A stretch of DNA of 64,000 nucleotides from Macrostomum lignano. Lineage: Eukaryota. Of this stretch, positions 40,086-62,984 are shown one piece after another (position 1 is the stretch's first letter; the number at the start of each line of letters is the position of its first letter). Made by a program: the position numbers and the translations under genes. The notes beneath the pieces are model-generated. The model saw only the letters and a program-made list of their open reading frames with translations. It was not told the origin of the DNA and made no database searches. The stretch spans positions 18,872 to 82,871 of the forward strand of contig NIVC01000470.1 in assembly GCA_002269645.1 (NCBI GenBank), written 5' to 3'.

Positions 40086-40091
40086 TTCGAA

Positions 40092-43000
40092 ATGGAGGAC
40101 GCCCTGCAATCAATGGAGGCCACTACAGAGATGGAGTCTTTGTTTAACTTGTATGGCTTCGAGGCTGCAGATTGCACAAATCTATTAGACGACAAAGACC
40201 TGCTTGACTGCACTGCTACAGTGGCTGACACTTCAGCTAATGCCAAGCCACTTGCTGAAATTGAAGCTGCCGCTGATGCCTCTGGGTCCACCAGAAGCAA
40301 GTCGGGCTCCGCTTCTGCCGCGGCCACTGGACCGTCTGACGGCCCGCTGGTGCGGCTGAGCGGCGGCACCGCAGCTGGCGTCGATGAGAACGCGGCAGCT
40401 GACTGGCGCCGCTGCACCGATCGGGTCACCGGGTGAGCGGCGCTGACAGTTGATGGGGAAGATTAATGGTAGATTGGGAAGATTGAGAGTAGATTGGGAA
40501 GATTGATGGTAAATTGGGAAGATTGGTGGTAGATTGAGAAGATTGATGGTAGATTGGGAAGATTGATGGTAGATTGGGAAGATTGGTGATAGATTGGGAA
40601 GATTGATGGTAGATTGGGAAGATTGAGAGTAGATTGGGAAGATTGGTGATAGATTGGGAAGATTGATGGTAGATTGGGAAGATTGAGAGTAGATTGGGAA
40701 GATTGATGGTAGATTGGGAAGATTGGTGGTAGATTGGGAAGATTGGTGATAGATTGAGAAGATTGATGGTAGATTGGGAAGATTGGTGGTAGATTGGGAA
40801 GATTGGTGATAGATTGGGAAGATTGATGGTAGATTAGAAAGATTGATGGTAGATTGGGAAGATTGGTGATAGATTGGGAAGATTGATGGTAGATTGGGAA
40901 GATTGATGGTAGATTGGGAAGATTGATGGTAGATTGGGAAGATTGATGGTAGATTGGGAAGATTGATGGTAGATTGGGAAGATTGATGGTAGATTGGGAA
41001 GATTGATGGTAGATTGGGAAGATTGGTGGTAGATTGGGAAGATTGGTGATAGATTGGGAAGATTGATGGTAGATTAGAAAGATTGATGGTAGATTGGGAA
41101 GACTGAGAGTAGATTGGGAAGATTGAGAGTAAATTGGGAAGATTGGTGGTAGATTAGGAAGATTGATGGTAGATTGGGAAGATTGATAGTAGATTGGGAC
41201 GGTTGATAGTAAATGGAAGTGGCAGATTGGGAGTTGGGAAGTGGCAGATTGGAAGTTGGGAAGTGGCAGATTGGGAGTTTGGAAGTGGCAGATTGGGAGT
41301 TGGAGAGTGGCAGATTGGGAGTTGGGGAAGTGGCAGATTGGGAGTTGGGGAAGTGACAGATTTGGAGTTAGAGGAGTGGTAAACTTAGGCACATTGCAAC
41401 GAAGTGTACATTCTGGATGCACATCGAACCGTGGCCGACTGTCCGCAGTTCTGACTCGTCTGCCGAAGTGGAAGTGTCGCTCAGGCCGGTGCACCGCCTG
41501 CCGCCAGACAGCCGTTACATGTTCCAGCGTTACGGCGACTGCCTGGCCGCTGTCGACGCCCAATTCGACATTCTTCGCCGACGGCTTCTAGCGCAGCTGT
41601 CGGCCCCAGCGGACGGCGGCGCCAGCCTACCAGTAACTGCGCCGGACGAAGTGTCGCACGAGCCCTGCGTACTGATTGGCCGGGTGGCGCCACCGCCTGG
41701 CGCTGCCGCCGCCGCCGCCGCCGCCACCAGCACCTCGGGCACATCGGCGACAGTGACGGCGACAGCTGGTCCGTCCGAGGTCGACGGCCGCCTGGCACCG
41801 CCGGCCCTGCTGCTGGAGTGTCCGGCCGCCTCCTCCGGCTCCTCCATTGTCAACGTCGACCTGTCCGGATGCGAGCAGAGCCGCTATTCGCTGTTCCCCG
41901 GACAGGTAGTTGCGGTCCGTGGTTCGAATCCCACCGGCCGTCTGTTCCTGGCCGAGGCCGTCCTGACGCCGACAGCGCCGCCACCTCGGCAGTTGTCGCC
42001 GCCGGGGCCGCCGTGTCTCGACCTCGCCGTGGCCAGCGGCCCGTTCGACGCAGCGTCGCTTTCGGCGCTGCTTCGCGTCTGCGCCGGCGGTCGGGAGCGA
42101 CCGCACGCTCTGCTACTGTCCGGGACGGGCTGGCGCCGGGCGCCGTTGTTTGGGCGCGTCGATCCGGCGCTGGAATCGGCGGCCAAATTCTGCCAACAGC
42201 GGGGAGTGCAGCTTGTGGTTCAGGTTGGCACTGCTTGTCCTGTTTGCAATGTTGCTTATTGTCATTGGCTATTGCCTATAACCCCGAGCTATTCACCTAA
42301 TGCCAATTAGTAGCTAATTGCCTGGCTATTTAACTACCAGTAGCAAATTACCTGGCTAAAACACTACCAGTAGTAATTGCCTGGCTATTACACTACCAGT
42401 AGCTTATTACCTGGCTATTACACTACCAGTAGCTAATTACCTGGCTATTACACTACCAGTAGCTAATTACCTGGCTATTACACTACCAGTAGCTTATTAC
42501 CTGGCTATTACACTACCAGTAGTTAATTACCTGGCTATTACACTACCAGTAGCTAATCTTAATTATATAACTAGCAGTTAACCTCATACTTAACCGTACC
42601 TAATTACCTGAAACGTACCCGTAGCTATAATTTACTGGTGGCTTTCCGTTGCCTAATTGGTAACAGTTTGATAAAATCCGTATACTATGTCTTTATATTA
42701 CGCTCGTACATGCGTATTTTACATCCCCATATTACATCCATACATTTCATCAGTACATTACATCCGTACATTACATCCGTACATTACATCCGTACATTAC
42801 ATCCGTACATTACATCCGTATATTACATCCGTACATTACATCCGTACATTACATCCGTACATTACATCCGTACATTACATCCGTACATTACATCCGTACA
42901 TTACATCCGTACATTACATCCGTATATTACATCCGTACATTACATCCGTACATTACATCCGTATATTACATCCGTATATTACATCCGTATATTGCATCCG

Positions 43001-43605
43001 TACATTACATCCGTATATTACATCCGTACATTACATCCGTATATTACATCCGTATATTGCATCCGACTCTCCTCTCCCCTCAGGCCCCGCCCGGGCCAGT
43101 CTATCCAACACCCGAGCTGCCCTGTCCCGGCCACGGCGCACTCTGCGTCCCCGACCCAGCCCAGCTGATTGTGCAACCGTGGGGCCACCGTCTGGCGTTC
43201 ACCGGAGTTGACAGCGTCGCCCACCTCGCCGCCGAGGAGGTCAGCGGCGGCGGCGGCGGCGGAGCAACCGAAGGCGGCAGCGGCGATCGCTTGGGCCGCC
43301 TAGCCGGCCACCTGCTGTCCCAGTGCTCAATGTATCCGCTGCTACCGTCGCACGACTCCCTGCCGTTGGACTATCCTCTGTGGGGCCGGCACTGCTTGCT
43401 TGGCGACGACACGCCACACCTGTTGATTGCCGCTTCTCAGGTGAAACCGTTTATTAAACTGTTGCCAACTGCAGCAGTTGAGCAAGGAAGCCAAACTCCT
43501 TGCTGCTGTTTCGTTAATCCTGGCCGCCTGTCCCGGGGCACCTACGGCCGGGTGCGACTGGGACCGGACGGTCAGCTGGTGGAGGCCGAGGTTCTGCGAC
43601 TGTGA
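40092..43605 (+). CDS. POLA2: DNA polymerase alpha-primase subunit B, 3 exons (40092-40432, 41449-42223, 43084-43605), 545 aa
   Basis: RYMFQR, VDLSGCEQSRYSLFPGQVVAVRGSNPTG, PVYP, HLLSQCSMYPLLP, PHLLIAASQVKPF and FVNPGRLSRG match hallmark POLA2 segments (YSLFPGQVV..G.N.TG; VNPGRL.KG). Intron phases 2 and 0 close in frame (1638 nt). The exon 1 assignment is less certain than exons 2-3. Confidence 0.9.
40453..41375. repeat. 20 bp (GATTGATGGTAGATTGGGAA)n then ~22 bp (GGGAAGTGGCAGATTGGGAGTT)n, filling POLA2 intron 1
   Basis: Direct reading; explains ORF 40463-41563. Confidence 0.95.
42335..43065. repeat. 30 bp (TACCTGGCTATTACACTACCAGTAGCTAAT)n at 42335-42555 and 13 bp (ACATTACATCCGT)n at 42715-43065, in POLA2 intron 2
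   Basis: Direct reading. Confidence 0.93.
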
Positions 43606-43835
43606 ACTGCTCACTAGGATGTGACCAGAGTAGTGCTAAGGCAGAGTGACTGCTCACTAAGATGTGACCAGAGTGACTGCTCACTGGGATGTGACCAGAG
43701 TGACTGCTCACTGGGATGTGACCAGAGTGACTGCTCGCTGGGATGTGACCAGAGTGACTGCTCACTGGGATGTGACCAGAGTGACTGCTCACTATGATGT
43801 GACCATAGTAGGGCTGATTCAGAGTGACTGCTCAC
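43606..43835. repeat. 27 bp minisatellite (GACTGCTCACTGGGATGTGACCAGAGT)n starting at the POLA2 stop codon
   Basis: About 7 copies. Confidence 0.9.
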
Positions 43836-44369
43836 TGAGGACACCGGAACAGCTTCCTTTATTAACTAGTGCATATACTTTATTAAAAAAAGAATCTTTT
43901 TATTGTAATTTTGTATCTAAGTGTTGCATTTGGTTTTGGGTTGAGTTGTCAAGCATTCTCCAGCTTTGTCTATTGTATTGTATTGTTTATAAATTTTAAT
44001 AATGCGGCATTTTTAATTACCTAAACTTTCTACTAACAGTAGTTAAACTTATTGCTCTAAGCTTTATAGTCTCTGTAATTAGTTTAAGTTGTCGATTTCC
44101 ACTGGCATTTCTATTTCAATTTATTCTGCGAGTACCCAAAATAAATGTATTGGCATTTCTCTTTGCGTGTTCTATGAATATCCTGTTTTTTATTTTCCCT
44201 GTCAAAGGTGCGAGTTATTCATAGTCAGCTTTGAATAGATAAGTTAACACCGCGTTTTCTTAATTATAGATTCTAGGCATAATTTTACATTGTCTTCTTC
44301 TCTCGCTTCTCTTCTACCGATTCTGTCCCAATTTTCTCGCCATTTTCTCTTATCTCCCTTCCCTTTCCT

Positions 44370-45430
44370 TTTGACTTTGTATCTCCCCTTTACCCCTCTC
44401 CCTTCCCCTCACCCTCTCTCCCTTCCCCTCACCCTCTCTCCCTTCCCCTCACCCCTCTCCCTTCCCCTCACCCCTCTCCCTTCCCCTCACCCCTCTCTCT
44501 TCCCCTAACCCCCTCTCCCCCTCGCCTCTTTCTCTCCCCCTTCCCCTCACCCCTCTCCCTTCCCCTCACCCTCTCTCCCTTCCCCTCACCCTCTCTCCCT
44601 TTTCCTCACCCTTCTCTCCCTTCTCCTCACCCTCTCTCCCTTCCCCTCACCCTCTCTCCCCCTCGCCTCTTTCTCTCCCCCTTCCCCTCACTCCCTCTCC
44701 CTTCCCCTCACCCTCTCTCACTTTTCCTCACCCTTCTCTCCCTTTTCGTCACCCTCCCTCTCCTCCTGACCCCTCTCTCCCTTCTCCTCACCCTCTATCC
44801 CTTCCCCTCACCCCTCTCCCTTGCCCTCACCCTCTCTGCCTTCCCCTCGCCTCTCTCTTCCTTCCCCTCACCCCTCTCCCTTGCTCTCACCCTCTCTGCC
44901 TTCCCCTCGCATCTCTCTTCCTTCCACTCACCCCTCTCTCATTTCCTCACCCTTCTCTCCCTTTTCCTCACCCTTCTCTCCCTTTTCCTCACCCTTCTCT
45001 CCCTTTTCCTCACCCTTCTCTCCCTTCCCCTCACCCTTCTCTCCCTTCCCCTCACCCTCTCTCCCTTCCCCTCACCCTCTCTATGTTCCTCTCACCCTCT
45101 CTCCGTTCCCCTCACCCTCTGTCCGTTCCCCTCACCCTCTGTCCGTTCCCCTCACCCTCTCTCCCTTCCCCTCACCCTCTGTCCGTTCCCCTCACCCTCT
45201 CTCCCTTCCCCTCACCCTCTCTCCGTTCCCCTCACCCTCTCTCCCTTCCCCTCACCCTCTCTCCGTTCCCCTCACCCTCTCTCCCTTCCCCTCACCCTCT
45301 CTCCGTTCCCCTCACCCTCTCTCCCTTCCCCTCACCCTCTCTCCCTCCCCCTCACCCTCTCTCCCTTCCCCTCACCCTCTCTCCGTTCCCCTCACCCTCT
45401 CTCCGTTCCCCTCACCCCTCTCTCCCCTCC
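44370..45430. repeat. ~21 bp polypyrimidine minisatellite (CTCTCTCCCTTCCCCTCACCC)n
   Basis: About 1 kb; the G-rich complementary strand could form G4 or H-DNA (inference). Confidence 0.93.
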
Positions 45431-45623
45431 GAATTCTGACCACCTGCTCTGCAATGATGCCTAATTTCGTTTTGATGCCAACTCAACTGGCATATCAGCA
45501 GTGTGTTTTAACTAAAAAAGAAACAACTAAGAAAGAAATTCATATAAAGCGTGCGCCTGAAAAAATCAAATTATAATAAACGATTTAATTAATTAAATCA
45601 GTTTGCAACAAGAGCGCCGCAGC

Positions 45624-48016
45624 ATGGAGCAGCAGCGTCACTTGCACGAGGAGAGGCGCTACATCACTAAACTGCTGCGCTGCTTCATACTTCGGGCTAT
45701 TCAAGTTGTACTGCAGAGCCGATCTGGCAGGCTGTTCCGCTACGCCTGCCGGGATCACAGCAGTGTTGAGCTGCTCGGACTGAGCTTCGAGGACGATCCA
45801 GAAATTGCCCTGTCGGCTAAGACTAAACTTGGCGGCCTGCCTGACCTGCGGCACGGCGATACCCACTCTGTGCAGGTGTTTCTCACCTGTCCAAATGCAC
45901 AAGCTCGAACTGATGAAGATGCTGACAATGACAGGCTGTATCTGGAGGTGTGGACATTTCGATTTGCCGAGGAGAGCGACCCATCTCTGCGTAGGGCTAA
46001 GGTTTGTGCTGCTAAATGGGATATTTTAGTGTCCTTAGCAACGATGCAAGCAAATAATGTTGTCTATGTAAGCAGCGTCCTTAGCAACGGGTGCTTGGGT
46101 TAAACGAGTGTTTCCAACGTAAGCAGCGTCCTTAGTAACGGGTGTTTGAGTTAAACGAGTGTTTCCAACGTAAGCAGCGTCCTTAGTAACGGGTGTTTGA
46201 GTTAAACGAGTGTTTCCAACGTAAGCAGCGTCCTTAGTAACGGGTGTTTGAGTTAAACGAGTGTTTCCAACGTAAGCAGCGTCCTTAGTAACGGGTGTTT
46301 GAGTTAAACGAGTGTTTCCAACGTAAGCAGCGTCCTTAGTAACGGGTGTTTGAGTTAAACGAGTGTTTCCAACGTAAGCAGCGTCCTTAGTAACGGGTGT
46401 TTGAGTTAAACGAGTGTTTCCAACGTAAGCAGCGTCCTTAGTAACGGGTGTTTGAGTTAAACGAGTGTTTCCAACGTAAGCAGCGTCCTTGGCAACGGTT
46501 CTAGAGTTGAATGAATGTTTTCCAGAGAGTAATCAGCGTCCTTGACAACGGTTAAACAAACGATCGTTGCCAAGGTTATCAGAATGTTTAATATTTGCGT
46601 TCGTTCCTAATGTAATCAGCGTCCATAGTAACAGTGCAAGCGTTGAGTGTTGCAAAGGTACTTAGCGTCCTTCTTTTCTGTAATAGCGCTCACATTAAGC
46701 GTCCCCTAGTGCCATTAAGGTGTTTGGCGTCCTTAGTTACAGTTCTACATAACTAACTAAGAGCAGGAAAACTCAACTACCATCAAAAGTGCAGTGTGCG
46801 TACTTTCCTTTAAAAACTCGCACAGGCATTCGACCGGCTAACCGTAGCTCTCAAAGCCCTCTGGTCCGTTGCCCGCGCTCTGCCAGCCTATCGCGTTGCC
46901 CGCCGCGGCACAACCGAGAGTCGGGTTCTCTGCTTCCGGCTGCTGCCGGGCGCAGCCGACCCGGCCGTCCTCGGGCCTGGCTACCAGAACCGGCGGTTGG
47001 CCTCTGTTCGAACTCTGGCCGGCACCCTGTCGCTTACCTGCTCGTTCCGTAGCCCCATCAAGCTGGGACCGGAGTCGCTGCGACTGCACGAAGGCCACTA
47101 CCAGCTGACTGAGGACTCCGTCAGCAACAATGTCGATCAGACTCCAGATTCAGTGGGAATTGATTCAAATTTTTTGCAGCAGCCAATGTCGCTGCCGCAG
47201 CCGGAAACGTCGCCGGTGGAAAATCCCAAGCCGACGCAGCCGCCGATGTCGGCCAGTGCGAGCCAGCAGAAGCAGAAGCAGCGACAGAGCGCCTTCTGCC
47301 CAGTTGGCCCGTTCGCCATGGTCGGCGCCAACGGCTTCGCTGCTCCGTTCGATCGTCTCTCCGACTGCAACGGCGGCGGCGTCGGCATCTTCGGCGATTT
47401 CGATGACGATTTGCCGTTCCAGTCGCTGATGTCGTCCTCTTCAACGGATGGCGCGGCGACAGCCTCGGCTTCGGCGACCGCCGCCCCTAACGACATCGAC
47501 TGCGGCTTGAACGGCGGCGAGGACGCCGACAGCCAGCAGTGCGAGATGTCGGCCGAGCTGTCCGACTCGCCAGACGAGGATGACGACGACGTCTTGCGCG
47601 TAGCCGACGGCAACAATTTTCAAGACGGCGACGGTGGCGCCTCGTTTGCGAGAGTGTCGCCATTGGACGAGTCCTCAGTTGAAGCTTCGGGCGACTTCGG
47701 CTCGGCAGCTGGAGGCGGGGGTCGCAACGGCTCGCTGGGGTCAGCCGAGGACATTGCAACAGGCGCTGCAGCGGCCAGCAGCATATCCGAGTTTCTGCCG
47801 TTTGCCAGCGACTGCTCAGCTGCGGATTTGCAGCGATTGCAGCAGCTCAAATCCGCTGTTAAGCTGGAGATGTTTGCCGCCCCGAATCCGCTGGCCGACC
47901 GCATCGGCGACATTCCCCGCCAGCTGAAGTTCTTTGAGCAGGACCTGGCTGAGTTTGACTGCATGCTCAACACTATGCTGGAGAGGAGCAGTGACTCCGA
48001 GCCTGAGCAGCTTTGA
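45624..48016 (+). CDS. ATG13: Autophagy-related protein 13, 2 exons (45624-46001, 46826-48016), 522 aa
   Basis: HORMA-domain segments FILRAIQVVLQSR, LEVWTF, AFDRLTVALKALWSVARALPAYR and GTLSLTCSFR parallel ATG13 ([51 protein letters not shown]). Disordered acidic C-terminus ends in DLAEFDCML. A phase-0 intron closes the frame (1569 nt). Confidence 0.88.
46068..46500. repeat. 51 bp minisatellite beginning GTAAGCAG in the ATG13 intron
   Basis: About 8.5 near-identical copies (46068, 46119, ...). Confidence 0.95.
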
Positions 48017-48024
48017 TCTTGCGG

Positions 48025-48785
48025 GAGGGCGATGACCGATCTAGGGAGGGCAAAAACCAATTTGATGAGTCAGGAGAGGGCAATGACCGATTCAATGAGT
48101 CAGGAGAGGGCAATGACCGATTCAATGAGTCAGGAGAGTGCAATGACCGATCTGAGGAGTCAGGAGAGGGCAATGACCGATCTGAGGAGTCAGGAGAGAG
48201 CAATGACCGATCTGAGGAGTCAGGAGAGGGCAATGACCGAATAAATGAGTCAGGAGAGGACAATGACCGATTAAATTAGTCAGGAGAGGGCAATGACCGA
48301 TCTGATGAGTCAGGAGAGGGCAATGACCGAATAAATGAGTCAGGAGAGGGCAATGACCGATCTGATGAGTCGGGAGAGGGCAATGACCGATTTGATGAGT
48401 CAGGAGAGGGCAATGACCGAATAAATGAGTCAGGAGAGGGCAATGACCGATCTGATGAGTCAGGAGAGGGCAATGACCGAATAAATGAGTCAGGAGAGGG
48501 CAATGACCGAATAAATGAATCAGGAGAGGGCAATGACCGATCTGATGAGTCGGGAGAGGGCAATGACCGATTTGATGAGTCAGGAGAGGGCAATGACCGA
48601 ATAAATGAGTCAGGAGAGGGCAATGACCGATCTGATGAGTCAGGAGAGGGCAATGACCGAATAAATGAGTCAGGAGAGGGCAATGACCGAATAAATGAGT
48701 CAGGAGAGGGCAATGACCGATCTGATGAGTCGGGAGAGGGCAATGACCGATTTGATGAGTCGGGAGAGGGCAATGACCGATCTAA
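48025..48785. repeat. 30 bp minisatellite (GAGTCAGGAGAGGGCAATGACCGATCTGAT)n immediately after the ATG13 stop
   Basis: About 24 copies. Confidence 0.95.
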
Positions 48786-49249
48786 TGACAGTTAGTTAGC
48801 AATGATACTTACAGAGTTAAAAAATTCCATTGTTTAAAACTGACGTTCACATTATTAGCTATAGTATGGGTAACATTTCTGATATTGCTACTTATTTTTC
48901 CTTAGTCTGTTAGTAGTGATAAAGTAAATTTGCTGTCATTTATTTTTTTACTGCATAAAAGTGAAAAAATTTTTTTCCTTACTTAGCGCCTGTATTGTGA
49001 AGTGCGATCCTGTGTGAGCTCGGCTTATTCATTCACCGTACTGTGTGTGCATTAGTCTTTCTTAAATATTGATCAGTTACCGAGTTACTGTCTGCTAATT
49101 GCGAAATTGTATGATTGGCACTGAGCATTGTAGATTCTGCATCTTGCGATGTCATGCTTTATGCTAATCCATCCTATGAAAGTTTTTTTTTACCTTTCTG
49201 TTTCTGTCTGATCTCTCGGTAATATATTTGCCTAATTTCTACACCCTCA

Positions 49250-49700
49250 CTCTAATCTCTCTAACCTCCATTTTCGCCTAACAACTTTCCCTGAATCTTT
49301 CTAATCCCCACTGCTCTCTAATCTCCCTAATCTCTACTTTACCGGCCTCTAATCTCCCTAATCTCTACTTTACCGGCCTCTAAGCTCCCCAATCTCTACT
49401 TTACCGGCCTCTAATCTCCCTAATCTCTACTTTACCGGCCTCTAATCTCCCTAATCTCTACTTTACCGGCCTCTAATCTCCCTAATCTCTACTTTATCGG
49501 CCTCTAATCTCCCTAATCTCTACTTTACCGGCCTCTAATCTCCCTAATCTCTACTTTATCGGCCTCTAATCTCCCTAATCTCTACTTTACCGGCCTCTAA
49601 TCTCCCTAATCTCTACTTTACACTCTAATCCCCTAACCTCTACTTTAACCTTTAATAGTATTACCCTAATCTCTACTTTATATCCTAATCTCTACCTATT
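49250..49700. repeat. 31 bp minisatellite (CTCTAATCTCCCTAATCTCTACTTTACCGGC)n
   Basis: About 10 clean copies plus degenerate flanks. Confidence 0.9.
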
Positions 49701-50424
49701 CCTCTAATCTTCCTAATCCCTACTCTTTCCCTTTAATCTGTCTAACCTCGCTATTTCCTCTCTAATCTGTCTCTAGCCTCTTTAATCTTCCCTTCTCGCT
49801 GCTCAGTTGGTGATGCACATGCACTAAATGCGTCCAGCTTACGCAGACGCACTGCACTTTCTAGTTGTGAAATTATGAATATGAAAATATTTGTACTTAA
49901 AATGCACTTCACCATTTAGTGCAGTCCCGTGCATAACACACACACACACACACATACACACACACACTAATGGATGTTGCCAGCCACAGTTTATAAATCG
50001 TCTTTCCCGACACGATAATCGAGTAACATCGGTCTCTCATAAATCCCTGTTCATTACATACTACTCACAGTCAGTAGTTTTGTTTCGTTATTACCCTTGT
50101 AAACAATAGAATAGTTTATATCAGATATAGCAGCCATCCGGTGGACTCTATTTTTGTTTCAAATATTGATTTCGACTCGCTTGTAAAATGCGTCATTTGT
50201 ACAGTTAATGTCACTTAAACTTGCTTTGCATATACTCATCTATTGCTGTTAAAAATTTACCCTACAGTACAAATCATTTTCAGCTAAGTAAATTTCCTTT
50301 CTAGGAAAATTCCTTTCTGTGATTTTGGCTTGCGGCGAAATTTCACCTAAAATCAATTTAAGACTTCTGTTGCTTTGCTGACTTTTAGCAAAATAGTATT
50401 TGCACGTAGGTGCTGTGTTCGGGT

Positions 50425-51520
50425 CTGGCCCAGCAACTTAGGATCGGGGAGGTTGGCTAAGCATCTGAGGATCTGGGAGGCTGGCCCAGCAACTGAGGAT
50501 CGGGGAGGTTGGCTAAGCATCTGAGGATCTGGGAGGCTGGCCCAGCAACTGAGGATCGGGGAGGCTGGCTAAGCATCTGAGGATCAGGTAGGCTGGCCCA
50601 GCAACTGAGGATCTGGGAGGCTGGCCCAGCAACTGAGGATCTGTGAGGCTGGCCCAGCAACTGAGGATCTGGGAGGCTGGTCCAGCAACTGAGGATCTGG
50701 GAGGCTGGCCCAGCAACTGAGGATCTGTGAGGCTGGCTCAGCAACTGAGGATCTGTGAGGCTGGCCCAGCAACTGAGGATCTGTGAGGCTGGCCCAGCAA
50801 CTGAGGATCTGTGAGGCTGGCCCAGCAACTGAGGATCTGTGAGGCTGGCCCAGCAACTGAGGATCTGGGAGGCTGGCCCAGCATCTGAGGATCTGGGAGG
50901 CTGGCCCAGCATCTGAGGATCTGGGAGGCTGGCCCAGCATCTGAGGATCTGGGAGGCTGGCCCAGCAGCTGAGGATCTGGGAGGCTGGCCCAGCATCTGA
51001 GGATCTGGGAGGCTGGCCCAGAGGATCTGGGAGGCTAGCCCAGAGGATCTGGGAGGCTAGCCCTGAGGATCTAAGAGGCTAGTCCTGAGGATCTAAGAGG
51101 CTAGTCCTGAGGATCTGGGAGGCTAGCCCTGAGGATCTGGGAGGCTAGCCCTGAGGATCTGGGAGGCTAGCCCTGAGGATCTGGGAGGCTAGCCCTGAGG
51201 ATCTGGGAGGCTAGCCCTGAGGATCTGGGAGGCTAGCCCTGAGGATCTGGGAGGCTAGCCCTGAGGATCTGGGAGGCTAGCCCAGAGGATCTGGGAGGCT
51301 AGCCCTGAGGATCTAAGAGGCTAGTCCTGAGGATCTAAGAGGCTAGTCCTGAGGATCTGGGAGGCTAGCCCTGAGGATCTGGGAGGCTAGCCCTGAGGAT
51401 CTGGGAGGCTAGCCCTGAGGATCTGGGAGGCTGGCCCTGAGGATCTGGGAGGCTGGCCCTGAGGATCTGGGAGGCTAGCCCTGAGGATCTGGGCAGGCTG
51501 ACACCAACAACTGAGGATCT
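50425..51520. repeat. 28 bp then 22 bp minisatellite (CTGAGGATCTGGGAGGCTGGCCCAGCAA / CCCTGAGGATCTGGGAGGCTAG)
   Basis: Direct reading; a short dispersed array of the 28-mer recurs at ~61455-61555. Confidence 0.95.
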
Positions 51521-51648
51521 GGTGACTGGCATTAAGATTAAATTAATCCAAGCAAAACTAGCCTAAGGAAGCTCTGATTACTCTTGCATTGTTTGTCTCT
51601 TGACTTGTCGCTACGCTGAACACCCGACATGCTTGCTGCAGCTCAGCC

Positions 51649-54600
51649 ATGTCGGCCGGAGACCGCGAGGAGCCGGCGATGTGGCCGCGGGAAGCCGCCT
51701 CCTGGATAGTGAGCCAGGCTGATCACGTGACCGTCCTGGAGGCGGGCATTCGCTCGCTGGCCGACACCCTGCAGCCGGTGTTCGAGCGGGGCGAGTACTC
51801 TCTGGCCAGCTGGCGGCGGCATCCTTTGAACCCGAAGTCAGCTGACGGGCGGGCAGTCAGCTGGGTGTTCCTGGCCGATACGCTTAATTTCTCCTTCTGG
51901 TCGGATGCCGAGGTTTGTTGGGGTTGTTGTTCGGTGACGAGGTTGTTGTGTCAGCAGCTTGATTTGTGTCAGGACCGTGACGTATCAGGGTCTAGCTATC
52001 GCGTCAGTGTCTGTCTGTTAATTGTGCCAGGATCTGTTTTGTCAGTGTCCGAGTCTGTTGTTTCAGTGTCAGGATCTGTTTTGTCAGTGTCAGGATCTGT
52101 TGTTTCAGTGTCAGGATCTGTTGTTTCAGTGTCAGGATCTGTTGTGTCAGTGTCAGGATCTGTTGTGTCAGCGTCAGGATCTGTTGTTTCAATGTCAGGA
52201 TCTGTTGTTTCAGTGTCAGGATCTGTTGTTTCAGTGTCAGGATCTGTTGTTTCAGTGTCAGGATCTGTTGTTTCAATGTCAGGATCTGTTGTTTCAGTGT
52301 CAGGATCTGTTGTTTCAGTGTCGGGATCTGTTGTTTCAGTGTCGGGATCTGTTGTTTCAGTGTCAGGATCTGTTGTTTCGGTGTCGGGATCTGTTGTTTC
52401 AGTGTCAGCATCTATTGTGTCAGTGTCTGGATCTATTGTGTCAGTGTCAGGATCTGTTGTTTCAGTGTCAGCATCTATTGTGTCAGTGTCTGGATCTATT
52501 GTGTCAGTGTCAGGATCTGTTGTTTCAGTGTCAGGATCTGTTGTTTCAGTGTCGGGATCTGTGTCAAGGCCAGGTCTATTGTGTCAGTGCCCGTCCACAA
52601 TACAATCGCTGCGCATCGCCAGGCTGACGCCAAGTTTTGCGTCACGTACGCGGGCGAGCGGCACACGGGCTACTGGTCCCTGTGCGCGGCCATCAACCGC
52701 ACTCTGGACGAAGGCTTCGACCTGCTGGACCCGAAACTCTGGCCCGGCCTGACTCTGGACAGATTGATTCATCTGCTTCGCGGCGACCGTTCTGAGATGC
52801 CGCTTATGCAGGAGAGGCTGGACTGTCTGCAAGAGACCGGTCGGATTCTGGTGGATCGGTACGGTGGGGACTTCAACAATGTGCTGCTGGCTGCGGCCGG
52901 CTCCGCCAGGAGGCTGCTGGAGCTGGTGGTCACCGAGTTCCCGTGCTACAGGGACGTCTCCGTGTATAAGGTGTGTCCTGTTACAGACAGCTGTGTTCCA
53001 GTGTCAGGCATAAGAGGTTGCAGTGTCAGGCATAAGAGGTTGCAGTGTCAGGCTTAGAGGTTGCAGTATCAGGCATAAGAGGTTGCAGTGTCAGGCTTAG
53101 AGGTTGCAGTGTCAGGCTTAGAGGTTGCAGTGTCAGGCATAAGAGGTTGCAGTGTCAGGCTTAGAGGTTGCAGTGTCAGGCATAGAGGTTGCAGTGTCAG
53201 GCATAAGAGGTTGCAGTGTCAGGCTTAGAGGTTGCAGTGTCAGGCATAAGAGGTTGCAGTGTCAGGCTTAGAGGTTGCAGTGTCAGGCTTAGAGGTTGCA
53301 GTGTCAGGCATAGAGGTTGCAGTGTCAGGCATAGAGGTTGCAGTGTCAGCCAGAGAGTTCAACTGTGATTGAGTCAATTTTGTTTCCTGCCAGACAGCGG
53401 GTTTTCCAGTTTCGCGCTTTCCTATTTAAGTACAGCCAGTCCTTTTCACGCGTGTTGCCATGCAGGGTTGCCGAGTAGGCCTGTACAAGCGAGCCCAGAT
53501 CCTTGTCGCCGACATCTGGGGTGCCCTGGAGGGCGCCGGCCCGGCCGATTTCAACGACATCGACTGTCTGACGGCGTTCGCCGACTACCGGATTCCGCAG
53601 GCGCTGGAGTACTTTGGGGTGCTGCAGTACGGGCCTTCGCTGAGGGAGGCTCTGAATGAGCGCCGCATGCTGCCCAATGGCCACCCTATGGAGGTGGGTT
53701 CGGCTGAGCATCTAGTTCTTCCCTGAATCATCTACTTCCTCCCTGAATCATCTACCTCCTCCCTGAATCATCTAGTTCTTCCCTGAATCATCTAGTTCTT
53801 CCCTGAATCACCTAGTTCCTCCCTGAATCATCCAGTTCATCCCTAAATCATCTAGTCCCTCCCTGAATCATTTATTACCTCGTGTATCATCTACTTCCTC
53901 CCTGACCCTGAATCTACTTCCTCCCTGAATCATCTAATTCTTCCCTGAATCATCTACTTCTTCCCTGAATCATCTACTTCTTCCCTGAATCATCTAATTC
54001 TTCCCTAAATCATCTAATTCTTCCCTGAATCATCTAGTTCCTCCATGAATCGTCTAGTTCCTCCCTGAATCATCTACTTCCTCCCTGAATCATCTAATTC
54101 TTCCCTGGATCATCTAATTCTTCCCTGAATCATCCAGTTCCTCCATGAATCATCTAGTTCCTCCATGAATCATTGAGTTCCTCCCTGAATCATCTACTTC
54201 CTCCCTGAATCATCCAGTTCCTCCCTGAATCATCTACTTCCTGAATCATCCAGTTCCTTCCTGAATCATCCAGTTCCTCCCTGAATCATCTACTTCCTCC
54301 CTGAATCATCTAGTTCTCCATGAAGCATCTAGTTCCTCCCTGAATCATCGAGTTCCTCCCTGAATCATCTACTTCCTCCCTGAATCATCCAGTTCCTCCC
54401 TGAATCATCTACTTCCTCCCTGAATTATCTAGTTCTCCATGAAGCATCTAGTTCCCCAGCTCACACAAATGTCGTTCTGTTGACTTAGTTCACTTTGTGT
54501 TTTAAATTCAATGTATCTTAATTGTCTTCTAGTAGTAGGCAGATATAGTAGATATCTGTGTACCCTGAAAAGGGCCGTTTTAGCTGGATCGCCAACACTT

Positions 54601-54823
54601 GCCCGATCCCATCGCGCGCCCGCAGGTGGAAATTCGCGGCGCCACAATCCACGCGGTGGAGCTGCTGGCCAGCGAGATGCGGCGCCGATTCTCGACCAGT
54701 GGAAACGGTCACCGGCTGATAAACTCGGTACTGCTCGACCACTACCTGTGGGACTACAGGCGGCAGTTCGCGGACAAGATCGACCACCTGCCGTTTCATC
54801 GGACCCGCTGCATCTACTACTGA
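51649..54823 (+). CDS. QNG1: Queuosine 5'-phosphate N-glycosylase/hydrolase (queuine salvage), 4 exons (51649-51912, 52623-52970, 53466-53693, 54626-54823), 345 aa
   Basis: HPLNP, WVFLADTLNFSFW, GYWSLCAAINR, FPCYRDVS, LYKRAQILVADIW, TAFADYRIPQ, EVEIRG, INSVLLDHYLWD and C-terminal PFHRTRCIYY match C9orf64/QNG1. All introns are phase 0 GT-AG; 1038 nt in frame. AATAAA at 54865 and 54886. Confidence 0.95.
52020..52590. repeat. 21 bp minisatellite (TCAGTGTCAGGATCTGTTGTT)n, QNG1 intron 1
   Basis: About 26 copies. Confidence 0.95.
53000..53350. repeat. 21-22 bp minisatellite (GTCAGGCTTAGAGGTTGCAGT)n, QNG1 intron 2
   Basis: About 16 copies. Confidence 0.95.
53720..54450. repeat. 20 bp minisatellite (TCCCTGAATCATCTACTTCC)n, QNG1 intron 3
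   Basis: About 35 copies. Confidence 0.95.
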
Positions 54824-55021
54824 CCGCTAGTATTAGTAGTAGGATTAGCTAGCAGTCTGTGCCAAATAAATCGATAAAATTGTGCAATAAACGAACCACT
54901 AGCTTAACTGTCTGTTTCTCTGAAATTGCAAATCGTTATGGTTTGTTTGAATGCCTTCAATCTGTGTATCCTAGCAGCCAATTGGATGGAGTTATTTCCT
55001 ATCCAGTTTACGTGTACACGG

Positions 55022-55226
55022 TAACACAGGAGGGTGTACAGCGGCCCTGAGTTTCTAATCGTCAGGCATGTGCACTCTGTGCCTTGGGGGTCGGGCCTCA
55101 TGGCTGTGAATCGCACGACATGCTCCAGACCAATTTCCGTGCACAGAGCCAAAGTTAGTGAGGCTGCGCACCGAATCGAGCCCAAGTACGTTTCTGCCGC
55201 ACTATCACTGAGCTCTTCTGCACGCG
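55022..55226 (-). mobile_element. tRNA-derived SINE copy (diverged)
   Basis: The reverse complement shares collinear blocks with 59821-60040: GGCTCGATTC, AAATTGG, TCGTGC, CCCCAAGGCACAG, TG(C/T)ACATGCCT, AGGGCCGCTGTACAC. Confidence 0.65.
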
Positions 55227-55243
55227 AATTTGTAAAATATATC

Positions 55244-56601
<1,358 letters not shown>

Positions 56602-57048
56602 GGGCAGGAATGGGGTCAGTATGGCATAGCAGGGCAGTTACAGTGTTGAGGTAGATAGGAAGTCTATTAAAAAAGAAAAGTCCAGTCCTGTACGCATTCC
56701 TCTTAAAAAGCAATTTCAAACACAAGAACAGGGGTGCTTCCCAGCAGCCATAGTCGGTCCTCAACTTGAGCACACTGGGGACTCAAATGGCCCAGACACA
56801 ATGGCAATTGCTGCATTATAAAGCAGTTCACCACAGCGTACACTGCGTTTGATTGCACAGCACTAAGCTGAAGCCATTCATCCAGACTACTGTACAGGGC
56901 GGAGTCAACAGCGCGCATTCACAAAAGAAACGGAACCCACATGCGGTATGGCCTAGTATTGCCTTTTATAAATCCTTTAGATTACGCAGTCAGTCACGGG
57001 ACCAGGTTAGCAATTCTTTCCTGACTGGCATTGCATGCAGAAAATCGC

Positions 57049-57534
57049 ATGGCAACTCCCGCCATCGCTGCCGAGGCCGAATCTCTACTGGCCGAGTGCC
57101 TGATGGCCACTGGTCACGTGACCCAGTGCGCCCTGGCCACCAGGCGGGAGCGTCTTGTTTTGGCCAGCCAGCCCGCGGACTCCAGTGGCTGGCCAAGCGC
57201 CAACGATATGCATTGTTTGGCCGGGGCGTTCATCCGGGCTGCTCGGCAGCGGCCGCTGTCTACTACTGCCGATAATGGTGGTAGTAGTAGCATGGGCCTG
57301 CCAAAGGCTGCAGTCTTGCGGCGCCCGCCTCTGCAGCTGGGCGGCCGCAGCTACTTGATTAGCCGGGCTGACGGCTTGTCGATCTATGCTTTGGCAGACG
57401 GCGGCGGCGGCCTGGTGGCGGTGCGGACTTCCGCGCATCTGCTGGTGGCCACCTACTCCGGTGCGATGTGCCCAGCCGTGTGCGTTGAGGCCTGCGAAAC
57501 ATTTGGCGACTATTTGCGGATGAAGGACAAGTGA
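57049..57534 (+). CDS. PFN4: Profilin-4-like protein, single coding exon, 161 aa
   Basis: LLAECLMATGHVTQCAL...SRADGLSIYA...LLVATYSGAMCPAVCVEACETFGDYLRMK closely parallels PFN4 (TLLGTKHVDSAAL...VRADEYSLYA...[29 protein letters not shown]). Acceptor TGCAG lies 8 nt upstream of the ATG. Confidence 0.85.
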   Translation: MATPAIAAEAESLLAECLMATGHVTQCALATRRERLVLASQPADSSGWPSANDMHCLAGAFIRAARQRPLSTTADNGGSSSMGLPKAAVLRRPPLQLGGRSYLISRADGLSIYALADGGGGLVAVRTSAHLLVATYSGAMCPAVCVEACETFGDYLRMKDK

Positions 57535-57574
57535 AGCTGCGTTTGTCCAATTAATTCAAGGTGGAGGTGGAACC

Positions 57575-58870
57575 TCTGATTAAGCACTCCCTAATCCTTC
57601 AGTTGGAAGCCTGTGATTAATCACTCCCTGATCCTTCAGTTAGAAGCTCCGATTAAGCACTCCCTGATCCTTCAGTTGGAACCTCCGATTAAGCACTCCC
57701 TGATCCTTCAGTTGGAACCTCCGATTAAGCACTCCCTGATCCTTCAGTTGGAACCTCCGATTAAGCACTCCCTGATCCTTCAGTTGGAACCTCCGATTAA
57801 GCACTCCCTGATCCTTCAGTTGGAACCTCCGATTAAGCACTCCCTGATCCTTCAGTTGGAACCTCCGATTAAGCACTCCCTGATCCTTCAGTTGGAACCT
57901 CCGATTAAGCACTCCCTGATCCTTCAGTTGGAACCTCCGATTAAGCACTCCCTGATCCTTCAGTTGGAACCTCCGATTAAGCACTCCCTGATCCTTCAGT
58001 TGGAACCTCCGATTAAGCACTCGAGTCGCAGGGAAATCAAGCAGCAGGCCCAGAGGCGCTGGGTCGGCTCCGTAGTCGAAGCTCTATCGGATGTGTTCTC
58101 CGCCATCTGGACCAACTTTATCGAGACGTCTGCCGAGTTTCAACAGGCTTCCCAGCTTCGGCCGGGCAGCGGCGGCAGCAGGCCGGGCACAGACGCACTC
58201 CCTAATCCTTCAGTTGGAAGCCTGTGATTAATCACTCCCTGATCCTTCAGTTAGAAGCTCCGATTAAGCACTCCCTGATCCTTCAGTTGGAACCTCCGAT
58301 TAAGCACTCCCTGATCCTTCAGTTGGAACCTCCGATTAAGCACTCCCTGATCCTTCAGTTGGAACCTCCGATTAAGCACTCCCTGATCCTTCAGTTGGAA
58401 CCTCCGATTAAGCACTCCCTGATCCTTCAGTTGGAACCTCCGATTAAGCACTCCCTGATCCTTCAGTTGGAACCTCCGATTAAGCACTCCCTGATCCTTC
58501 AGTTGGAACCTCCGATTAAGCACTCCCTGATCCTTCAGTTGGAACCTCCGATTAAGCACTCCCTGATCCTTCAGTTGGAACCTCCGATTAAGCACTCCCT
58601 GATCCTTCAGTTGGAACCTCCGATTAAGCACTCCCTGATCCTTCAGTTGGAACCTCCGATTAAGCACTCCCTGATCCTTCAGTTGGAACCTCCGATTAAG
58701 CACTCCCTGATCCTTCAGTTGGAACCTCCGATTAAGCACTCCCTGATCCTTCATTTGGAGTCTCAGTAATCACTCCCGATTCTTCAGTTGGAGTCTCAGA
58801 TTAAGCACTCCCTGATCAGGGAAGCCTCTATGGTCGCTGCGACCATAGAGGCTTCCCTGCCCTGATCCTT
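57575..58870. repeat. 36 bp minisatellite (GATTAAGCACTCCCTGATCCTTCAGTTGGAACCTCC)n, interrupted twice
   Basis: Near-identical copies, interrupted by a 175-bp exon copy (58022-58196) and a 43-bp palindrome (58817-58859). Confidence 0.95.
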
Positions 58871-59223
58871 CAGATGAAATTTGAGTAGTTAATGCATGTA
58901 CAAATCCCGGTTGCACAATCACAGTTACCTTAAAAAAACATTTTTTGTTGATATTTTCGAGATATTTAACGAGCTAGAGTTGATTGTTTATTCCGTTTTT
59001 ACTTGTAACAAAACAAACTACATTAATACTGCATGCATGAAAAACAATAAAGTTAAAAAATAACAAGAAAAACAAAGCCGAGGAGCGTGAAGCTTGTTAT
59101 TGTTCTTGGAATTCATGGAATGGTTCGCAGAAAAAAGTCTATGGTAAAAAGCGGTAGTATCGCTAGGGCATCGAGCCCAAGTGCAGTATATTGCACTGAA
59201 ATCCCAGCTAAATACGATCGTAC

Positions 59224-61192
59224 ATGAAAAGGACAAGAATGCCTCAACGACTGAAGCAGCAGTTTCGACGTCTGGACGCCCTCATCCGGGTCTACTCGCC
59301 GCCCAGACAAGCTCGCGTCGTATTCTGGGATCCGGCGGACTTGCCGGCCTCATCGCCATCTGTAGCCACCGACAGCGGTGAACAGCCGAGCACCAACGCC
59401 TGCAACAGTCGCTCTTCTCAGCAGCAGGTCCCCCAAGAAGACCGGGACGGTCTGACCGCAGCGCCGAGTCGCAGGGAAATCAAGCAGCAGGCCCAGAGGC
59501 GCTGGGTCGGCTCCGTAGTCGAAGCTCTATCGGATGTGTTCTCCGCCATCTGGACCAACTTTATCGAGACGTCTGCCGAGTTTCAACAGGCTTCCCAGCT
59601 TCGGCCGGGCAGCGGCGGCAGCAGGCCGGGCACAGACGCCAAGCTGGTGTCCAATGCGTTCTCGTCCGATCAGCTGATGAGCTCTCGGCCGAGCTTCCGG
59701 ATTCACTTCCGCCTGCTTCAGGAGTTCAGCAACTCGCATGCGCTTACGGTAGGTTTTGAATTTCTCATTTTCTACTTCTTTGTTTTTTAGCACGTTCACG
59801 CGGTGTTTTAATCACTGAGGGGCCGTAGCCTCGTGGTATAGAGCAGCGCTCTGATGTGCCAGCGACCCAGGCTCGATTCCAAGTGCAGTCACATTAATTT
59901 TAGGGCTAAATTGGAATCTCAGCTTGGCTCTGCTCGTGCAATTAACGGCCTTGAGGGGCCAACCCCCAAGGCACAGTGAAGTGTACATGCCTAACAATAA
60001 ATAAAGTTAGGGCCGCTGTACACTCCTGTGTGACTGGGTGCCTGTGTGTATGACTGCGTACGTATCCGCGCGCTTGTGTGCCTGCTCAGGGGAGTCGGCG
60101 GAATAGGCAATAATGCCTCTCGCCTAAAGTGCACTAAGGCGCCAAGGGTGCACACAGCCCCTGCCTCTAACCAAAATGTTTGAATTCTCATTTGGTTGCC
60201 TTTTCTTGCTCAAACCAATCGTGCAGGACTGGGAGAATAACGCGGCGGTGAACGCCTACATCGAGCAGCTAAAGTTCGATCCAATGATCACCGAGTGCTG
60301 CACTGGCTTGTTCAACCGGTTAGACGTGCCAACCCTGCAGACGGTTGACTCGTTCGTGCGCACTCTGCGCCAGGTCTGGTTCCAACCGCTGGAGACTAAT
60401 GCTGGGCAGCCGCGCTGCGGCTATCACCACGTGTGCATCGGGGAGTTTCACAGCCGGAGCAAGTCAATCGGGGCATGCACAACTGGTTCAAGTATCTGCT
60501 CGAAGAGGAGAAGCACAACACTAGGATTCTAAACTGGTGGTCCTACGAGAAAGACTTGCGTGAGTTTTCGTCTCATTACAAAGCTTAGCAAAATGATTGT
60601 TTTTTCAGAATTAAAAGCATGGATTGCTCCTTTGCAATCTGTGTAATCAAAGGTGTCAACCATATCTGCTACCCAAAGCTCTTGTCTACGACACAAATCA
60701 ACCAATGGACTGGCACCGACTGAGCCAATTGACTTGTTGCCTGTTTGGATTTATTGATAATATTGATAATAACTGCAGGAGTTCTTGGGCAACCTGACGC
60801 AACGCCTTCGGTTAATCCTGCCGTGGTTGGGCAGACGCTCTGGGCGTGGAATTTTCCAATTTATTAATAACCAAATCTATTTTTATGACACATGTGTGCT
60901 GTTGCAATAAACCTGTCAAACTGTTGCAGACCTGATCAGCATGAAGTTCAACATGAAACACCCGGATTTCGATGCCTGGTACACAAAAGAAAAGTCCAGC
61001 TTCCTGGTTGGTGTGCCAACCGATTTTGAGTTGCTGCTGTTCACTGTGGTTACCATGGTGAATCCTAACAGGGACACAAGCATTCAGATCAAGGACTACG
61101 AGCCCTTGGTGGTTGTGCCGAGGAGCTTGAAGAAGACGGGCAGTTTGGTGACGGCGTACTTTCGTGAGAGTCCCAAAAGGATCAGCGGTTAG
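59224..61192 (+). CDS. ENDOU: EndoU/XendoU-family uridylate-specific endoribonuclease, 3 exons (59224-59748, 60227-60559, 60930-61192), with a 1-nt frameshift at 60470-60473; 373 aa if restored
   Basis: LRQVWF...CGYHHVCIGE, then in the shifted frame GMHNWFKYLLEEE, then KEKSSFLVGVPTDFELLLF...LVTAY, matching EndoU motifs (MWF, GFEHVF.GE, G.HNW..YL.EK, K..GS.FIG.SPEFE, IATAY). Splice phases close only if one G is added. The start codon is uncertain. Confidence 0.8.
59817..60040 (+). mobile_element. tRNA-derived SINE in EndoU intron 1
   Basis: A-box TAGCCTCGTGGT, B-box-like GGCTCGATTCC, and a body shared with 55022-55226. Confidence 0.7.
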
Positions 61193-62351
61193 GAGCTGGA
61201 CTGGCTGGTAGCGCAGCTTCACTCCACTCTGTTTCCGTTTTGATTTTGATTTCATTTCTTCAAAATTTAATTTGCAAAATTCACTGCCCTCAAAAAGTTA
61301 ACTTGAAATTGAAGCCAAACTTAAATAGACAACTGACCTCAAAGTACGTCAAAAATTGGCATTTGCGTTTGCGTAACTGAATCAGCAGTTTTTGTTTGTT
61401 TTGCTTTGGGGAGCGGCAGAATTTAAACTGTAGGACTGTCAGGGGGTGACCCGGCAACTGGGGATCTGGGAGGCTGACCCAGCAACTGAGGATCTGGGAG
61501 GCTGGCCCAGCATCTGAGGGTCTGGGAGGCTGGCCCAGCAAGTGAGGATCTTGGAGGGCAGTGGCAGTCAGGCATATTAAAATGGATAGTCAGTATGCAC
61601 GACTGCTCTCGTCAGCGAAGCTACAACTAAAATGAGAAATGAAGTGCACACGAATTTCAAAAGGAAATTCACTTTTGCCGAAGCTTATTTCCTCCGCCTT
61701 CGGATTAGAGTAGTCCCTGAGTGGTCAATTCTACTTGTTTGTCCTAAAAGCAGTGAAGTTTATTCTTCGGTAAGTGGCAAACACTGCAGATGTGCGGTGT
61801 GCATTAGAATACACAAGCAGAAGCTCTGCTAGATAGCCTTAGCACAGTGAGGGCCATCAGTGGTTTGTTGACAAGTTTTATCTTGCATTTCTCTGCTACG
61901 GCGAAAGAGAAAAAAATAATCAAGGCAAAAGGCAATGATGTTGTGAGCGCTGAGCTCTCTCTGGCTCTCTCTCTCTCTCTCCGTGCAAGGGCCAAGCTGA
62001 GGTTTGAGCACAGGTAAACACGGGGCTTGAGAACTACGCACGTATGAGCCAGTTGAGCCATAAACTGCTGTGCAGGGTTGATGAAGAAAGCAGCTCGCCA
62101 GTCTCTCTCTCTCTTTCCTTCACCTCGCGCTTAAAGCAGAAGAAAAGAATCGTCCAGATACTAACGCACAGTGGTCCGCTGTCTCCTGGGCAACAGAGAA
62201 TGAGTGGCAGATGTGCGCTGTGCGCAGACCCGCTTTTTATAAGATGAACGCGGGCAAGGTGGCAACGGGAGAGACATAGCTGTTGACAAATCAAGCAATC
62301 TTTGAAATCTGACTTCTCAGCTGAGCACGCGAGCATCGATCAATCGCTACG

Positions 62352-62984
62352 ATGGCGCTGTTTCGTGGCCTGGAAGAGCCGGAGAACGTGGGCTACTACG
62401 CGGTGATCAGGTTCACGCAGGACATTGCCTACAATTACCACAATAGCGTCAAGCGCACAGCCTCCATCATTCAGCGCAGCCACGGTGGACACGAGTGCGC
62501 CTTCCTGCCGGACGTGCAGCGTATTGAAGGCGATGAGAGGCGACTGTACGGCTACGGAGTTTTGTACTTTCCTAACTTCGACGCGGCCAAGTACTGGTAC
62601 GAGTGCACTAATGAGGTTCGCCAGCAGGACTGGCTGTGGTCAGCCGATATTGTAATCGTGCCAGCTCGAGGCGCCTTCGACAAAGGCATGGCCGTCCTGG
62701 AGATCAACGACTGGTCAGCGTTCAGGGATCAGACGGCTTTCGAAGACGAGTACCTCAAGGGGCTCAACAACACGACCGAGGGCCGTTGGAACATTGTGGC
62801 CTGTCCGGACTACCTGCAGTACCGGATGCGCAGCAGCTGGAGTCCCAAGTACCTGGTTATCAACCAGTGGTCCGACGTGGAAACCTGGCGAAGTTACAGG
62901 CAAGCACACGGCGCCGCGATGCACAGCTTCGCCCAGACCGTGGCCACGGGCTCCGTGCAGGTTGGCGTCAATCTCAACGTGTGA
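62352..62984 (+). CDS. Intronless protein with two tandem DUF1330-like (dimeric alpha/beta barrel) domains, 210 aa
   Basis: GC3-rich coding bias. RIEGD...VLYFPNFDAAKYWY and SWSPKYLVINQWSDVETWRSY resemble the DUF1330 pattern EG.W...V...FP..EAA..WY. Upstream CTGAC...TTCTCAG acceptor at 62320. Confidence 0.7.
   Translation: MALFRGLEEPENVGYYAVIRFTQDIAYNYHNSVKRTASIIQRSHGGHECAFLPDVQRIEGDERRLYGYGVLYFPNFDAAKYWYECTNEVRQQDWLWSADIVIVPARGAFDKGMAVLEINDWSAFRDQTAFEDEYLKGLNNTTEGRWNIVACPDYLQYRMRSSWSPKYLVINQWSDVETWRSYRQAHGAAMHSFAQTVATGSVQVGVNLNV

Follow-up and report, generated by a model that had tools for sequence, protein, structure and literature searches.

We analyzed a 64,000-nucleotide stretch of the genome of the flatworm Macrostomum lignano (the window, whose positions we use throughout). 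It corresponds to NIVC01000470.1:18872-82871 in assembly Mlig_3_7 (GCA_002269645.1), and the end of the window is the end of the contig. A first-pass annotation, made from the sequence alone, had proposed that six genes in the window form an operon whose transcript is resolved by spliced leader (SL) trans-splicing. As it stated, six functionally unrelated genes lie head to tail on the + strand:

40089..43605, + strand: POLA2 (DNA polymerase alpha subunit B); exons 40089-40432, 41449-42223, and 43084-43605; ATG at 40092; from the match to GenBank
45624..48016, + strand: coding sequence of ATG13 (autophagy protein with a HORMA domain), 522 amino acids in the annotation; range from GenBank, identity from matches to HORMA structures in PDB
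51643..54823, + strand: QNG1 (queuosine salvage, C9orf64); exons 51643-51912, 52623-52970, 53466-53693, and 54626-54823; ATG at 51649; from the match to GenBank
57049..57534, + strand: profilin-family gene; single exon, 161 amino acids; from Pfam Profilin
59224..61192, + strand: EndoU / XendoU endoribonuclease; exons 59224-59748, 60227-60559, and 60930-61192; locus tags BOX15_Mlig033690 g1-g3
62352..62984, + strand: DUF1330-like gene; single exon, 210 amino acids; last gene of the same-strand run

Four of the six names given by the first-pass annotation (POLA2, ATG13, QNG1, and EndoU) are correct. Our exon sets exactly reproduce the deposited POLA2 (PAA82433.1, BOX15_Mlig023857g1) and QNG1 (PAA82435.1, BOX15_Mlig025852g2, which is partial). 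POLA2 has two Pfam domains above their cut-offs (DPOA2_OB, PF22062, 43.7 bits; DNA_pol_E_B, PF04042, 38.9 bits). QNG1 matches the whole of the Q_salvage profile (PF10343, positions 1-285 of 285, E = 1e-107) and is about 48% identical to animal QNG1 proteins. For ATG13, the Pfam family of that name gives a weak score (17.7 bits, versus a cut-off of 25 bits), but similarity to HORMA structures of human ATG13 (8do8, 5xuy, and 5c50; E = 2e-16 to 2e-15 with phmmer) identifies it as a member. Its probable first intron (46068-46825) holds an array of a 51-mer; our 522-amino-acid reconstruction differs from the deposited protein, so the intron coordinates are just approximate.

EndoU encodes an intact protein of 373 amino acids in both of the other genomic copies of this cluster (described below), with a clear match to XendoU (PF09412, 84.8 bits, E = 7e-24). 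In the window, exon 2 has a run of four Gs at 60470-60473 instead of the five in NIVC01000873.1. This shifts the frame, and hence the window's copy (PAA82436.1) has 276 amino acids and ends at 60532. The shorter run could be a homopolymer error in the assembly or a real inactivating change.

The other two names were too specific. The gene that had been called PFN4 can be assigned to the profilin family (PF00235, 61.5 bits, E = 1e-16; PDB profilins, E = 5e-7) and no further. Its reading frame is intact in a paralogous copy, with one extra glycine. It was not deposited as a GenBank coding sequence in either of the two copies that we checked (the window and NIVC01003649.1), and a look-up of its exact product gave no record. 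Transcripts overlapping repeats were filtered out of the deposited gene set, and an array begins 34 nt past the profilin stop codon, which plausibly explains the omission. The last gene scores 20.7 bits against Pfam DUF1330, below the cut-off of 23 bits, and we do not assign it to that family, although UniRef names a 78%-identical paralog "DUF1330 domain-containing."

Nothing was detected between the six genes: there are no opposite-strand genes, Pfam-bearing reading frames, tRNAs, or Rfam matches, according to the GenBank coding sequence tables of the window and two paralogous copies and our scans of the spacers for reading frames and RNAs. In other words, these are adjacent genes on the same strand, without an opposite-strand gene between them. 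Past the DUF1330-like gene, the next gene is about 1.2 kb away on the minus strand (in both paralogous copies). The entire cluster is present in two more near-identical copies, on NIVC01000873.1 (~99% identity) and NIVC01003649.1 (~95-97%), which fits with the large-scale duplication that is known in this line of M. lignano (PMC8629364). At 95-99% identity, the three copies are too recent to be informative about synteny.

The first-pass annotation correctly pointed to Macrostomum, where SL trans-splicing and operons are well established (PMC8629364, PMC5730564). M. lignano has one SL of 35 nt; 30% of the genes undergo SL trans-splicing and 15% belong to operons of 2-9 genes (Ustyantsev & Berezikov 2021, PMC8629364). 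The published definition of an operon asks for neighboring genes that share a strand, SL trans-splicing of the downstream gene, and a distance between the genes of under 1 kb after subtracting repeats. Repeats are subtracted because they inflate the spacers of operons in this species. The repeat-subtracted distances have a bimodal distribution with a peak at ~100 bp, and the cut-off was set at 1 kb (PMC8629364). The spacers of our cluster are as follows:

43606..45622, + strand: spacer 1, POLA2-ATG13; 2017 nt, 61% array; arrays at 43642-43809 (27-mer) and 44392-45430 (20-mer); 781 nt non-repeat
48017..51641, + strand: spacer 2, ATG13-QNG1; 3625 nt, 62% array; arrays at 48046-48788, 49316-49739, and 50425-51499; 1365 nt non-repeat, single-copy
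54824..57040, + strand: spacer 3, QNG1-profilin; 2217 nt, 61% array; (TAGA)n at 55244-56601; 859 nt non-repeat; ends in CAG 57038-57040
57535..59207, + strand: spacer 4, profilin-EndoU; 1673 nt, 75% array; 36-mer at 57568-58817, interrupted at 58022-58196; 423 nt non-repeat
61193..62320, + strand: spacer 5, EndoU-DUF1330; 1128 nt, 10% array; 111 nt of repeat at 61447-61557; 1017 nt non-repeat; ends in CAG 62318-62320

We measured each spacer from the stop codon to the proposed acceptor and identified tandem arrays with TRF. These figures include 3' untranslated regions (UTRs), so they are upper bounds on the intergenic length. The first-pass annotation described spacers of 1.1-3.6 kb that are largely tandem repeat; the lengths are right, and four of the five spacers are mostly array (61-75%), but the last is not (10%). 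After subtracting the 3' UTRs, the four junctions with 781, 859, 423, and 1017 nt of non-repeat DNA would fall below the 1 kb cut-off, as masked by TRF. The arrays are not peculiar to the spacers, because introns of POLA2 (both), ATG13, and QNG1 (all three) carry the same kind. Outside the arrays, each spacer retains 420-1365 nt of DNA with 97-99.5% conservation among copies of the cluster; except for one element of ~95 nt, this DNA is single-copy.

Canonical polyadenylation hexamers lie 30-160 nt ahead of 3 of the 5 downstream acceptors, which is not significant. In spacer 1, AATAAA (45575) and ATTAAA (45592) are shortly before the CAG at 45620-45622. An ATTAAA in spacer 2 (51537) is 104 nt before the CAG of QNG1 (51639-51641), and the sole AATAAA of spacer 4 is at 59046, with the acceptor CAG at 59205-59207.

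Several features of the repeats themselves are worth recording. A family of 28-mer minisatellites (CCCAGCAACTGAGGATCTGGGAGG...) occurs in two spacers, at 50425-51021 in spacer 2 and at 61447-61557 in spacer 5. Its copy number varies: the array before the DUF1330-like gene is 111 bp in the window and ~890 bp in NIVC01003649.1 (~8330-9217 of L004). The ~95-nt element is interspersed, with copies in the QNG1-profilin spacer (55024-55118), inverted in intron 1 of EndoU (59934-60031), and on an unrelated contig (L007, 8737-8814), at 78-85% identity. There are (TAGA)n arrays of over 1 kb at both 16690-17879 and 55244-56601. Finally, the interruption in the 36-mer array of the profilin-EndoU spacer duplicates 175 bp from exon 1 of EndoU (58022-58196 is 100% identical to 59464-59638). 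In NIVC01003649.1 this array is shorter and lacks the duplicate, which may reflect a local rearrangement or a misassembly.

The DNA upstream of POLA2 has a different composition. Two more genes lie on the + strand there, but far from the cluster:

~23668-27911, + strand: homeobox gene; homeodomain in the reading frame at 27336-27911; poly-Q/poly-A tracts in 23668-24144
32444..33547, + strand: FAM183 gene; coding sequence 32448-33547, 145 amino acids, Pfam FAM183; CAG at 32444-32446; outside the cluster and used as a calibration case
33548..40072, no strand: upstream intergenic region; 6.5 kb, 27% GC, repeat-poor, with tandem repeat over 578 of 6525 nt (9%)

The AT-rich region is likely to be the promoter region of the first gene. 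Its GC content (27%) is well below that of the unique DNA in the spacers (34-47%), which resembles that of the introns (36-51%). We view the intron-like GC content of the spacers and the placement of the polyadenylation hexamers as weak, non-significant signs of an operon.

The first-pass annotation placed a YAG splice acceptor, usually with a CTRA motif, 7-31 nt before each ATG. A YAG is present at every one of these positions: TAG at 40070-72 for POLA2, and CAG at 45599-601 or 45620-22 for ATG13, 51639-41 for QNG1, 57038-40 for profilin, 59205-07 for EndoU, 62318-20 for the DUF1330-like gene, and 32444-46 for FAM183. But a YAG precedes 60-65% of all + strand ATGs in the window at this distance (7-31 nt), together with the CTRA motif in 15-26%, and a YAG at 6/6 genes has p ~0.06. 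The published acceptor motif of M. lignano is [T/C]TNCAG (PMC8629364), and just two of the sites match it in full, those of QNG1 (CTGCAG) and FAM183 (TTTCAG).

The annotated 5' ends of the genes bear on SL use as well. In the TBONE annotation pipeline, transcripts are cut where SL-trimmed reads peak, and TransDecoder then calls the reading frames (PMC5730564), so a 5'-partial coding sequence reveals where the transcript starts. For QNG1, the coding sequence is 5'-partial from 51643. The closest stop codon in frame lies 42 nt upstream of this position, so the annotated transcript must start at 51641-51643. The first base after CTGCAG (51642) is inside this interval. The coding sequence of FAM183 is also 5'-partial, and in two copies it begins at the first in-frame codon behind the CAG. 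These boundaries give indirect support to the use of the SL at QNG1 and FAM183, at the acceptors that had been proposed (51641 and 32446).

The annotation is less favorable to some of the other sites. For ATG13, acceptors at 45601 (the first choice) and 45622 had been suggested. The coding sequence begins 1 nt past the CAG at 45620-22 in both copies examined, which is compatible with an SL acceptor there, while a transcript from 45601 would have yielded a partial coding sequence from 45603, which excludes that site. For POLA2, the proposed acceptor near 40071 is not matched by the annotation: the annotated 5' end is at 40087-89, not at the TAG, and the partial coding sequence starts at 40089 in the window and past the ATG in both paralogous copies, but never behind an AG. 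This 5' end is ragged and not of the SL type, as would be expected for a promoter-proximal first gene. EndoU and the DUF1330-like gene have in-frame stops within the putative first exon, so the annotation is uninformative about their acceptors; it says nothing about that of the profilin gene either. We also noticed a bias in phase: relative to the proposed exon starts (32447, 40073, 45623, 51642, 59208, 62321, and 57041), the ATG is at 3n+1 nt in 6 of the 7 genes and at 3n in none. If these acceptors are used, the AUG at the end of the SL would be out of frame with every reading frame (post hoc, p ~0.02).

The BOX15_Mlig locus tags link these genes to the published RNA-seq annotation, because the prefix of the tag denotes a cluster of transcriptional units (from StringTie/TACO). 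POLA2 has the prefixes Mlig023857, Mlig031759, and Mlig005835; QNG1 has Mlig025852; EndoU has Mlig033690 (where g1-g3 are the three genomic copies); and DUF1330 has Mlig015604. Other records add little. We found no M. lignano transcript contigs for these genes in the protein clusters that we examined. A Logan contig (SRR28338165) holds an ortholog of the DUF1330-like gene that is ~93% identical, apparently from another species; its 5' end does not have the M. lignano SL, but the contig may be genomic, so this is uninformative. A query with a chimeric multi-gene protein gave just two matches and was swamped by low-complexity candidates. Neither the SL sequence, an SL RNA gene, tRNAs, nor any Rfam family was found within the window. 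The cluster's genes were not among the rows in the portions of the supplementary tables with "TRANSSPLICED" flags (Grudniewska 2016, 2018) that we could consult, and the paper text that we searched does not mention the cluster's locus tags.

Overall, it is plausible but unproven that this locus is an ordinary example of the SL operons with repeat-inflated spacers that have already been catalogued in M. lignano, and we treat it as a candidate. We estimate the probability that at least one junction is truly polycistronic at roughly 0.55; this includes the case of all six genes in one operon. We consider an arrangement in two units, POLA2-ATG13 and QNG1-profilin-EndoU-DUF1330, to be the most likely, ahead of one six-cistron unit. 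We place the break at the ATG13-QNG1 spacer because ~1.3 kb of unique DNA is retained there. A conventional promoter in the upstream AT-rich DNA would drive POLA2. We infer that RNA polymerase II would read through at least some of the spacers that are filled with minisatellites. To release the downstream messages, the upstream gene's transcript would be polyadenylated and the 35-nt SL would be added at a CAG that is 1-31 nt before each ATG.

Several observations weigh against an operon at this locus. A YAG upstream of the ATG is at the chance level and on its own carries almost no information. Among the acceptors in the cluster, QNG1's is alone in matching the full motif, and even SL use at QNG1 does not prove an operon, because ~60% of SL genes in M. 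lignano are outside operons (PMC8629364). The published RNA-seq units are separate for POLA2, QNG1, EndoU, and DUF1330. According to the authors, units break at the repeat-rich spacers of operons (PMC8629364), so we take this as absence of support and not as refutation. Spacer 2 retains 1365 nt of non-repeat DNA, or ~1336 nt after a plausible 3' UTR, and exceeds the 1 kb cut-off when masked with TRF alone. An older paralog of the DUF1330-like gene is located by itself between minus-strand genes. As for conserved gene order in other flatworms, QNG1 in the cestode Spirometra (the one flatworm ortholog that we checked) has MAS20 as its neighbor, with no ATG13 or profilin within 10 kb. The database has no QNG1 ortholog from another Macrostomum; the next matches are from molluscs, at 49% identity.

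The proposal of the first-pass annotation, that all six genes are one polycistronic unit with a single promoter upstream of POLA2, five spacers that are read through, and resolution by the SL, is not supported and strikes us as unlikely. It does account for some of the data. Co-orientation is unbroken until the convergent minus-strand gene past the DUF1330-like gene, and a long AT-rich, repeat-poor region is found upstream of POLA2 only. The 5' end of POLA2 is not of the SL type, as expected for a first cistron, and ~18% of the published operons begin with a non-SL gene (PMC8629364). The ATTAAA that precedes the acceptor of QNG1 falls on the same side, and operons of up to nine genes have been published (PMC8629364). 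However, spacer 2 has more single-copy DNA (~1.3 kb) than the published cut-off allows, the published units for POLA2, QNG1, EndoU, and DUF1330 are separate, and 93% of published operons have just two or three genes. An older automated protein model (ML2; UniProt A0A1I8F9N7, 1007 amino acids, spanning ~40.1-53 kb in the window) might seem to favor a single unit, because it fuses POLA2, ATG13, and QNG1, and one study regards chimeric gene models as a possible sign of polycistronic RNA (PMC12582326). But the model is ridden with frameshifts, and there are separate UniProt models for QNG1 and EndoU as well. The fused model (a queuosine glycosylase in UniRef's naming) is therefore probably an artefact of gene prediction. 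We doubt that there is a genuine six-cistron SL operon here, with kilobases of minisatellite arrays inside 3' UTRs or intercistronic RNA and polyadenylation at a distance of just tens of nucleotides from the SL acceptor that follows.

Alternatively, there may be no operon. The six genes would then be independent and merely co-oriented, with their own promoters in the unique DNA of the spacers, and some of them (at least QNG1) would be SL trans-spliced to remove an outron. We consider this a serious possibility, although a somewhat improbable one. The 420-1365 nt of conserved single-copy DNA per spacer is enough for proximal promoters (2 kb or less suffices in M. lignano), and most SL genes lie outside operons. 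The separate prefixes of the transcriptional units, the chance-level YAGs, and the monocistronic context of the DUF1330 paralog all fit with independent genes. Also, the homeobox gene and FAM183 are on the + strand and yet far away, so co-orientation reaches beyond any operon. On the other hand, four junctions, which our analysis counts as consecutive, have under 1 kb of non-repeat DNA, and this would be unusual for independent neighbors given the bimodal distribution of distances (PMC8629364). The composition of the spacers resembles introns and not the flanking intergenic DNA, and there are polyadenylation hexamers near 3 of the acceptors. Between these two alternatives, we prefer the reading in which some junctions are polycistronic and the run is divided at spacer 2.

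The first-pass annotation described a six-gene operon as unusually long and suggested that this gene set had not been described before. Both statements were overstated: a genome-wide study of the same assembly reported operons of up to nine genes whose spacers are inflated by repeats (PMC8629364). The length of the cluster, its repeat-filled spacers, and the unrelated gene set are not surprising for M. lignano. We see no functional logic in this combination of genes, as is usual for metazoan operons. If this is an operon, then it is one more long example of a class that is known throughout the M. lignano genome, and it was probably already counted there. If all six genes were in one unit, it would be among the longest operons in M. 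lignano and would place POLA2, a replication gene, under the same promoter as genes for autophagy, queuosine salvage, a profilin, and an RNase. Either way, the cluster could be used to study how RNA polymerase II and 3'-end and SL processing cope with kilobase-scale tandem arrays between cistrons. It also suggests caution in the design of transgenes, as the DNA immediately before QNG1, EndoU, or another of the downstream genes may lack promoter function.

How does the cluster compare to known operons? The SL2-type operons of Caenorhabditis elegans also produce polycistronic pre-mRNAs of unrelated genes (2-8 of them) that are resolved by 3'-end formation coupled with trans-splicing. But C. elegans has a dedicated SL2 and intercistronic regions of ~100 nt, while just one SL is known in M. 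lignano and our spacers measure 1.1-3.6 kb before repeats are subtracted, so this is not an operon of the SL2 type. The operons of parasitic flatworms (Schistosoma and Echinococcus; Calvelo et al. 2025, PMC12582326) are similar in that the flatworm SL ends in AUG. The candidates in those genera were defined by strand, proximity (with a cut-off of at most 300 bp), and an SL acceptor at the downstream gene, and most are gene pairs (PMC12582326). The closest comparison is to the SL operons of M. lignano itself (PMC8629364; Wudarski et al. 2017, PMC5730564). Besides the species, the assembly, and the single 35-nt SL, our cluster shares with them conserved but unrelated genes on the same strand, kilobase-scale spacers that are mostly tandem repeat, a CAG just upstream of the ATG, and a first gene without an SL site. 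It differs in that SL status is inferred for just one downstream gene and that one spacer has over 1 kb of non-repeat DNA. Among the published operons of M. lignano, 75% have two genes, 18% have three, and the largest has nine (PMC8629364), so an operon of six genes would be in the rare tail of this distribution.

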